Part shown: positions 44,903-45,958 of the stretch, one piece after another | Layout of the letters: the number at the start of each line of letters is the position of its first letter | Numbering within the stretch: the stretch's first letter is position 1 | Assembly: GCF_000143415.4 (NCBI RefSeq) | Contig: NW_003314272.1 | Span: forward strand, 2,691,728-2,755,727 | DNA from: Selaginella moellendorffii | Lineage: Eukaryota > Plantae > Lycopodiophyta | DNA: 64,000 bases | Direction: 5' to 3' | Made by a program: the position numbers and the translations under genes | The notes under the pieces: model-generated | What the model was told of the DNA's origin: nothing | What the model saw: only the letters and a program-made list of their open reading frames with translations | Database searches by the model: none

Positions 44903-45958
44903 CTACATGATATCATAGACAATAATAAACTGAGGAAGGATGGCAGCATTATCATACACTACAAGCTCATCAAAGTTGAGTATCCCTCCCACTTCACCAG
45001 ACACGGAGTGATAGCCATCCGGTGGAGCAACCAATTCGGGCCTGTCCTCGGTCACCTTGAACACTCGCCCAGCCAGAACCTTACACACGAGCATGGCATG
45101 GTGCCTGGAAGCCGAGGAGCTGCCGTAGGCCTTGACATAGTCGTTTGCCTTGCTGCTGGTTGCCGTCACATAGATCCCCGCCCCAAACCGGAGGAATCCA
45201 TCCACCTTTGCTTTCTTCTTCTTGAATCCGGCCAGGATGATGTTGCAGAGGCTGCACGAGAGATTGCTGCACAGTGACTGCTGCTGCGGCGTCCCGAGCC
45301 CGCACAGGACCGTCGTGCCGTGGAAGCGCAGGACCTCGTTTCCATTCTTTCCAATCTTCTCGTCCCTGCTCCCTCTCTGGGCCATCAGCTTTTCTCTGTA
45401 GTCCGCGAACCGCTTCACCCTGTGGCCCGGATTGTACACGCGGAGGATGTCAATGATGGACGCTTCGCTGCCTGGATGATTCCATTTGGCACGGAAGTAT
45501 GCCAAGACTCTTCCTCGTTCCGGGTCGTCCTTGCGCATGCTCTCCACTGAAAAAACACGGGTAAATAACGAGAGAGCTTCTGGAAACTGGCCAGAGGAGT
45601 GGTTACCTGCGTGCTTTACCAGGAAGTGCTGGTCCAGGTACTGCGGGGAGTCGAACTTCGCGCCGCACACGAAGCATGAGAAGTGCTTTCCCCCGTCCCG
45701 TGGGCCGGACACCTTCATATGCGCTGCTGACGACCGCTGGTGCTGATGGAGCTCATGGTGATCCCGGAACTTCGCTCCACAGTCACTGCAGGCCAGGACT
45801 TTCGGAGTAGGAGTTGGGGCCGAGGGAGCCTTGATTGAGCCAGAACATTGGCCGTGACTATCTCTGAAATGTTGTAGCATGTACTCCTTGCTCGTAAACG
45901 ACCTCAAACAGCCAGGAGCTTTGCAGGGGACCCTTGCTTGAGCATGGAGTTTAGACAT
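44903..45958 (-). CDS. Triple C2H2 zinc finger plus PARP-like ADP-ribosyltransferase domain protein
   Basis: Three C2H2 fingers, then RFHGT, RFGAGIYVTATSSKANDY, MLVCKVLAG, GYHSV and NFDELVVYDNAAILPQFIIVY. A 5'-UTR intron lies at ~45967-46016. Confidence 0.85.
   Translation of the reverse strand: MSKLHAQARVPCKAPGCLRSFTSKEYMLQHFRDSHGQCSGSIKAPSAPTPTPKVLACSDCGAKFRDHHELHQHQRSSAAHMKVSGPRDGGKHFSCFVCGAKFDSPQYLDQHFLVKHAGNHSSGQFPEALSLFTRVFSVESMRKDDPERGRVLAYFRAKWNHPGSEASIIDILRVYNPGHRVKRFADYREKLMAQRGSRDEKIGKNGNEVLRFHGTTVLCGLGTPQQQSLCSNLSCSLCNIILAGFKKKKAKVDGFLRFGAGIYVTATSSKANDYVKAYGSSSASRHHAMLVCKVLAGRVFKVTEDRPELVAPPDGYHSVSGEVGGILNFDELVVYDNAAILPQFIIVYDIM

Follow-up and report, generated by a model that had tools for sequence, protein, structure and literature searches.

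Land plants are usually credited only with PARP1-3 and the inactive-looking RCD1/SRO proteins. A locus in the lycophyte Selaginella moellendorffii raises the question of whether a further type of PARP exists in plants. Within the 64,000-nucleotide stretch of contig NW_003314272.1 that we analyzed (the window), a reverse-strand open reading frame (ORF) had been interpreted, in a sequence-only reading, as a zinc-finger protein fused to an ADP-ribosyltransferase (ART) with a complete His-Tyr-Glu (H-Y-E) triad, of either ancestral or horizontally acquired origin. What the locus expresses, which PARPs its product resembles, how it was inherited and whether it encodes an enzyme are considered in turn. 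The explanation that we consider likely to cover all observations jointly is an expressed gene for three C2H2 fingers and a tankyrase-type ART domain, vertically inherited within a PARP branch marked by a four-cysteine (Cys4) insert and encoding a targeted, NAD+-dependent enzyme.

Gene structure, expression and zinc fingers

RNA contigs from four public runs belonging to four studies were mapped to the window region 43700-47300. In contigs of runs X1, X2 and X9, representing three studies, a 60-nt intron is absent and position 45546 is joined to 45607; the splice-site sequence, gcag/gtaacc...ttttcag/tggag (slashes mark the intron borders), is of the GT..AG type. The X1 contig (1078 nt) corresponds to 44842-45546 plus 45607-45967 with 0 differences. 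Because the intron is in frame and has no stop codon, the ORF reads through it. The gene extent proposed earlier, 44903-45958 on the reverse strand, therefore stands as an ORF with 351 codons' worth of residues (351 aa), while the real product after splicing has 331 aa. In the runs with the zinc-finger PARP intron removed, the upstream MurA gene is likewise spliced at four introns, and the downstream GDSL gene is nearly without cover, which identifies the runs as RNA; the zinc-finger PARP gene is thus transcribed and spliced. The intron interrupts the segment linking finger 3 to the catalytic domain, and splicing leaves the architecture intact. The gene and its finger region comprise the following features.

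44842..45967 (-), transcript, approximate ends, from RNA contig cover
45607..45958 (-), coding exon 1, start codon and three C2H2 fingers
45854..45925 (-), C2H2 finger 1, C-x4-C-x12-H-x4-H (C12/C17/H30/H35), from sequence reading, with a weak zf-C2H2_8 match
45719..45790 (-), C2H2 finger 2, C-x2-C-x12-H-x6-H (C57/C60/H73/H80), matching zf-C2H2 at residues 57-76
45611..45676 (-), C2H2 finger 3, C-x2-C-x12-H-x4-H (C95/C98/H111/H116), of the zf-met/U1-like type
45547..45606 (-), intron, 60 nt, phase 1, GT..AG, in the Val codon that directly follows the H-A of finger 3
44903..45546 (-), coding exon 2, with the ADP-ribosyltransferase (PARP catalytic) domain and the stop codon

The 331-aa product matches an S. 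moellendorffii RefSeq model annotated as ‘tankyrase-like isoform X1’ (P0001). Its locus on GL377588.1 is 97.05% identical to the window across 3.6 kb and has the MurA neighbor as well, which makes the two loci alleles or haplotypes. Between the two coding sequences, 16 sites differ and dN/dS is 0.37, which gives no sign of decay, 16 sites being too few for a firm test. The uninterrupted ORF, exon 2 and P0001 served as search queries, and the joined 331-aa sequence was used for numbering, local BLAST and trees.

The neighborhood showed further features. Directly upstream on the same strand lies the MurA-type gene (UDP-GlcNAc enolpyruvyl transferase; window 46016-48174 (-)), with a Pfam EPSP_synthase match at the allelic locus and introns of 53-67 nt, every one of them removed in the RNA contigs. 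About 50 nt separate the end of its transcript from the start of the zinc-finger PARP transcript; a single X2 contig (2659 nt) covers both genes, so read-through or overlapping untranslated regions are possible. Just downstream, an intronless GDSL lipase ORF (320 aa; window 43778-44740 (-); Pfam Lipase_GDSL, E 4e-23) was hardly covered by RNA contigs of the four runs, apart from one low-depth X10 contig at its 5' end. GL377588.1 also carries remnants of the zinc-finger PARP and GDSL lipase pair, ~80 kb away from the allelic locus: at least two partial, degraded copies (L006 5018-7049, 9058-9755 and 10075-10835) with 84-89% identity, many gaps and one inverted fragment. The proteins annotated there (P0002, P0004, P0005, P0007 and P0035) are partly out of frame and have an incomplete triad; P0035 joins the C-terminal ~45 residues encoded by the PARP gene to an unrelated 500-aa protein without a Pfam match.

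Pfam zf-C2H2 and zf-met both matched the ORF product, the latter at residues 93-112 of finger 3 with 23.7 bits against a cut-off of 21.2. Fingers 2 and 3 are conserved among streptophyte orthologues, and zf-C2H2_jaz exceeded its cut-off in the orthologue P0182. Plant C2H2 transcription factors are characterized by sequence-specific DNA binding and by a QALGGH helix or tandem arrays with short linkers. The Selaginella protein has C2H2 fingers in common with them, but direct sequence reading revealed no QALGGH motif in any of the three, and the linkers between them are long and non-canonical (21 and 14 residues). Given these properties, finger spacings and Pfam matches of the U1/matrin/JAZ kind appear to fit RNA or protein binding better than a classical DNA-binding array, and the partner of the fingers may be a protein instead of a nucleic acid.

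Catalytic domain and the four-cysteine insert

The exon 2 product belongs to the PARP/ARTD superfamily: it scores 45.7 bits for the Pfam PARP catalytic domain PF00644 (gathering score 26.7; E 7e-12) and has an ART fold carrying H-Y-E at the NAD+ site. Together with the zf-C2H2 and zf-met matches and direct reading of the sequence, this bears out the proposed fusion of three C2H2 fingers to a PARP-fold domain. With a 29-sequence alignment as input, AlphaFold (AF2) modeled the catalytic domain at a mean pLDDT of 91.3; a single-sequence AlphaFold prediction of the whole ORF (pLDDT 29) was discarded, and the confident model covers the catalytic domain only. Foldseek returned tankyrase 1/2 catalytic domains as the top match (E 6e-16, TM 0.76), and VIA-align superposed the model on tankyrase-1 residues 1109-1311 with Z 24.2 and an rmsd of 1.9 Å over 183 residues at 29% identity. 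In a profile-to-sequence alignment, the family motif N-E-x-R-R-F-H-G-T pairs with tankyrase NERMLFHGS, F-G-x-G-I-Y...S-S-K-A-N-D-Y with FGAGIYF..NSSKSNQY and Y-D-E-L-V-V-Y with YAEYVIY, which puts the triad and further NAD+-site residues at their expected places. The three triad codons had been located exactly in the earlier reading, and His, Tyr and Glu indeed pair with the tankyrase catalytic residues. The catalytic features are listed here, with conservation given for the family alignments A1, A2 (29 sequences) and A3 (10 sequences).

45314..45322 (-), H-G-T with catalytic His213 (His193 in the spliced product) and the NAD-binding Gly, corresponding to tankyrase-1 FHGS; invariant in A1, A2 and A3
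45320-45322 (-), His213 codon
45245..45304 (-), Cys4 insert with C219/C230/C235/C238; four Cys invariant in A1, A2 and A3
45137..45184 (-), G-x-G-I-Y...T-S-S-K-A-N-D-Y with Tyr263, Ser268, Lys270 and the second Tyr274; invariant or nearly so
45170-45172 (-), Tyr263 codon
44966..44968 (-), catalytic Glu331 (Glu311 in the spliced product), corresponding to the Glu of tankyrase YAEYVIY; invariant in four family alignments

The Cys4 insert is located between the His strand and the next helix, at the donor-loop site of PARPs, tankyrase included. In the profile alignment, ~23 positions containing the four cysteines have no tankyrase counterpart; the insert was modeled at pLDDT 89-95. A cysteine-rich insert at this point had been suggested to bind zinc, and the invariance of all four cysteines in A1, A2 and A3 supports this, making the insert probably a zinc knuckle. 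In the family profile, a gap stands where the catalytic domain of tankyrase has its own zinc site (C-x2-H-x4-C-x2-C, following the S-S-K helix); the family thus lacks this site and has the Cys4 insert at the donor-loop position instead.

Tankyrases 1 and 2 (PARP5a/b, Clade 4) are the best match by sequence (profile E 2e-21) and by structure, and they resemble the Selaginella protein in H-Y-E, S-S-K, the second Tyr and the lack of a helical regulatory domain before the ART fold. True tankyrases, reported solely from bilaterian animals, consist of ankyrin repeat clusters followed by a SAM domain and the catalytic domain (PMC2964712), whereas the Selaginella protein has C2H2 fingers in their place and its ORF product gave no Pfam match to Ank or SAM. 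Similar in design are the animal proteins PARP12, PARP13/ZAP and PARP7 (Clade 3), with N-terminal nucleic-acid-binding zinc fingers and a C-terminal ART domain. These have CCCH fingers and WWE domains, and their catalytic Glu is replaced to give H-Y-I or H-Y-V (PMC2964712). The Selaginella protein has C2H2 instead of CCCH fingers, no WWE and an intact Glu, and its likeness to animal zinc-finger PARPs is one of analogy, not descent.

Among the other PARP-fold proteins of land plants, PARP1-3 contain WGR and regulatory domains, and RCD1/SRO proteins contain WWE and RST domains and a degenerate triad. The accessory domains of both are absent from the Selaginella protein, as had been noted: WGR, PARP_reg, WWE and RST had no Pfam match in the ORF product, and for WGR and the helical regulatory (PRD/HD) domains this held even at E<=1. 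Profile matches to PARP1-3 (Clade 1) were weaker (E ~1e-12 to 1e-13, compared with 2e-21 for tankyrase), and the intact triad separates the protein from RCD1/SRO (Clade 2). PARP6, PARP8 and PARP16 (Clade 6) have a non-canonical H-Y-I or H-Y-Y triad. The Selaginella protein retains the Glu, and no PARP6, 8 or 16 chain was among its 60 best PDB sequence matches (tankyrase, PARP4 and PARP1-3), so that triad and match list both set it apart from this clade.

Family range and descent

We defined the Cys4-insert branch by F-x3-W, H-G-T, four invariant Cys between His and Tyr, G-x-G-I-Y, S-S-K and D-E. The Selaginella domain has all of these features, which are invariant in A2 and A3, as are the Glu and the S-x-K motif. 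In a larger set of 107 sequences, the Glu and three Cys are invariant, whereas conservation of the His, the Tyr and the fourth Cys is 90% or more. An exhaustive HMMER search with the A2 profile, in which the window's domain is the first row, yielded 610 cluster representatives at E<=1e-30; the matches listed were the best 150 of 8792. Named fungal members come from Agaricomycetes (Russula, Fomitopsis, Serendipita and others), Glomus (Glomeromycota) and one chytrid. Further named members belong to brown algae (Ectocarpus, Scytosiphon and others), accompanied by a marine protist transcriptome, and to plants, represented by Selaginella, two Marchantia species and Mesotaenium endlicherianum. Judged by these sequence comparisons, the branch is a large and old eukaryotic PARP lineage with the Cys4 insert as its hallmark.

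The N-terminal partners of the ART domain vary across the branch. Streptophyte members have C2H2 fingers and many fungal ones cysteine-rich repeats without a Pfam match; ankyrin repeats, protein kinase, RanBP2/CCHC/TRAF fingers, NADAR and a DCD domain with an Upf1-like helicase are rarer (1-3 proteins per domain). The partners related to nucleic acids point weakly to nucleic-acid or protein targeting, each being represented by very few proteins. P0206 (1226 aa, from an ENA contig) combines DCD, an Upf1-like SF1 helicase and a Cys4-insert ART and falls in the sister group of the streptophyte clade described below.

Within the PARP literature that we searched, this branch is annotated without being described. 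Eukaryote-wide PARP surveys make no mention of Selaginella or a C2H2-PARP (PMC2964712, PMC4245714); a ‘CCHH Zn2+’ item that one figure legend in PMC2964712 contains was considered and rejected, as the text never ties it to the Cys4-insert family. For fungi, two publications of 2026, a survey covering 534 species and a review, recognize only PARP1-like and PARP6-like types (bioRxiv 10.64898/2026.07.25.740670; PMC13720257), a two-type scheme that appears to miss the Cys4-insert family. Several Russula species (P0045, P0047, P0048 and P0049) encode a Cys4-insert PARP, despite the listing of Russulales among lineages with PARP losses in that survey (bioRxiv 10.64898/2026.07.25.740670).

The zinc-finger ART gene is not unique to Selaginella. 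Marchantia polymorpha MpC2H2-23 (Mp6g04430; 393 aa), M. endlicherianum ME000232S03818 and several Logan transcripts combine C2H2 fingers with an ART domain carrying the invariant H/Y/E and four Cys. The two named proteins are ~36-42% identical overall to the Selaginella protein, from which the Marchantia protein differs by an extra fourth N-terminal finger and a C-terminal tail. MpC2H2-23 has been tabulated as an archegoniophore-expressed transcription factor that belongs to the core pangenome and does not occur in Riccia and Ricciocarpos (PMC11923412). Another orthologue, P0009, may be N-terminally truncated or decaying, with in-frame stops in the first finger region of its transcript (L002 ~190-620).

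To place these proteins, 67 catalytic domains of the Cys4-insert family were analyzed in a careful, unrooted IQ-TREE phylogeny. Ten streptophyte-type sequences, seven of them derived from Logan runs, form one clade with moderate support (UFBoot 76, SH-aLRT 94), and five further sequences are its sister group. Fungi form a separate clade (88/87), and one branch splits the named fungi from the streptophytes in 200/200 bootstrap trees. Brown-algal and protist groups lie farther out than the fungal clade, with weakly supported deep branches. FastTree and a quick tree agreed with these results. The gene structure provides a second marker: the Marchantia gene has a phase-1 intron of 561 nt in the Val codon after the last finger's H-A (junction CAC GCA G/GT...AG/TG), identical in codon, phase and junction to that of Selaginella, and the Logan contig L004 keeps an intron at the equivalent position. 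The streptophyte clade and the common intron indicate that the common ancestor of liverworts and lycophytes already had the gene, and they argue that the C2H2+ART form is inherited vertically within streptophytes and that the gene is probably older than land plants.

These data bear on two scenarios of transfer. A recent acquisition of the gene by the Selaginella lineage from a basidiomycete or other fungus was suggested by our first search, in which Selaginella was the only named plant and the best named matches outside it were Agaricomycetes with ~40-45% identity in the catalytic domain. The likeness to fungal PARP-domain proteins remarked on earlier is therefore real; it is accounted for by fungi being a neighboring clade of the same family. 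We regard such a transfer as very improbable, as Marchantia and Mesotaenium orthologues have the C2H2+ART architecture, streptophytes are apart from the named fungi in all 200 bootstrap trees, Selaginella and Marchantia have the phase-1 intron in common and fungal N-termini consist of different cysteine-rich modules instead of C2H2 fingers. Of the two origins proposed in the sequence-only reading, the ancestral one is thus retained and the horizontal one falls, since the gene nests among vertically inherited plant orthologues with the same residues. A more ancient exchange between kingdoms, for example involving early fungi and the ancestor of Zygnematophyceae and land plants, would explain the patchy range of the family differently from descent from the last eukaryotic common ancestor (LECA) with losses. 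It would fit the position of the streptophyte clade and its five sister sequences next to the fungal clade, with brown algae and protists farther out and deep branches weak, and the lack of chlorophyte, moss, fern or seed-plant members among the named matches. We nevertheless judge it improbable, because the range is known from the named minority of family sequences, the tree is unrooted and PARP types are well documented to have been lost repeatedly (PMC2964712; bioRxiv 10.64898/2026.07.25.740670).

Concerning other plant lineages, the named matches of three word-indexed searches, which depend on words shared with the query, included no seed-plant, fern or moss member, and sequence searches gave no seed-plant member with intact motifs. 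Shape and feature searches of the ESM Atlas identified several Streptophyta-dominated clusters (394-479 aa, 63-108 members each) named ‘C2H2-type domain-containing protein’ or ‘putative nucleic acid binding’. Those found by shape have the ART fold of the Selaginella domain without a Pfam PARP call, and the clusters may represent the divergent angiosperm relatives that the sequence-only reading described as lacking the GIY tyrosine.

Predicted activity and targeting

Is the domain an enzyme? The NAD+-site residues H, G, Y, S, K, Y and E are invariant in the 10-sequence alignment, which extends from the zygnematophyte alga Mesotaenium to the lycophyte Selaginella, and almost invariant in comparisons between kingdoms. 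From this conservation we infer that the catalytic domain is probably an active ADP-ribosyltransferase. It would transfer ADP-ribose from NAD+ onto itself and nearby targets, and the fingers would bring it to an RNA, DNA or protein partner. That the three fingers target the enzyme is suggested more weakly than the activity itself. H-Y-E is necessary for activity and yet compatible with either poly- or mono-ADP-ribosylation; PARP3, which has H-Y-E and a different donor loop, performs mono-ADP-ribosylation only (PMC13720257).

With a zinc knuckle replacing the donor loop, NAD+ binding could also be blocked or altered. Plant RCD1/SRO proteins have been proposed as non-catalytic PARP-fold proteins, and the Selaginella product might likewise be a pseudoenzyme, acting as a scaffold or C2H2 transcription factor and using its PARP-like domain to bind NAD+, ADP-ribose or partners without catalysis. 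The replaced donor loop would suit this possibility, as would the cataloguing of MpC2H2-23 as a transcription factor (PMC11923412) and the many streptophyte C2H2 proteins in the ESM Atlas with the fold and without Pfam PARP, which suggest that the lineage may tolerate loss of the signature. The NAD+-site residues argue otherwise: they are invariant in streptophytes and nearly so in fungi, brown algae and protists, unlike PARP clades with lost activity, in which the catalytic Glu or His has been replaced (PMC2964712). The fingers, without QALGGH and canonical short linkers, also fit poorly with a transcription factor, and we hold a pseudoenzyme to be a doubtful explanation. Only slightly less doubtful is a bolder proposal, in which the branch would constitute a seventh PARP clade of active zinc-knuckle ARTs that are guided to RNA or DNA by U1/JAZ-like fingers and modify nucleic acids or bound proteins, with inactive descendants in seed plants.

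New here is a further PARP branch with a complete active site and a hallmark of its own in a lycophyte, a liverwort and a streptophyte alga, which is also widespread in fungi and brown algae. If active, its members would add a new writer of ADP-ribosylation to plant biology and offer a natural experiment on the effect of a zinc knuckle in the donor-loop place on PARP chemistry. The existence of the Marchantia orthologue Mp6g04430 makes the function directly testable.
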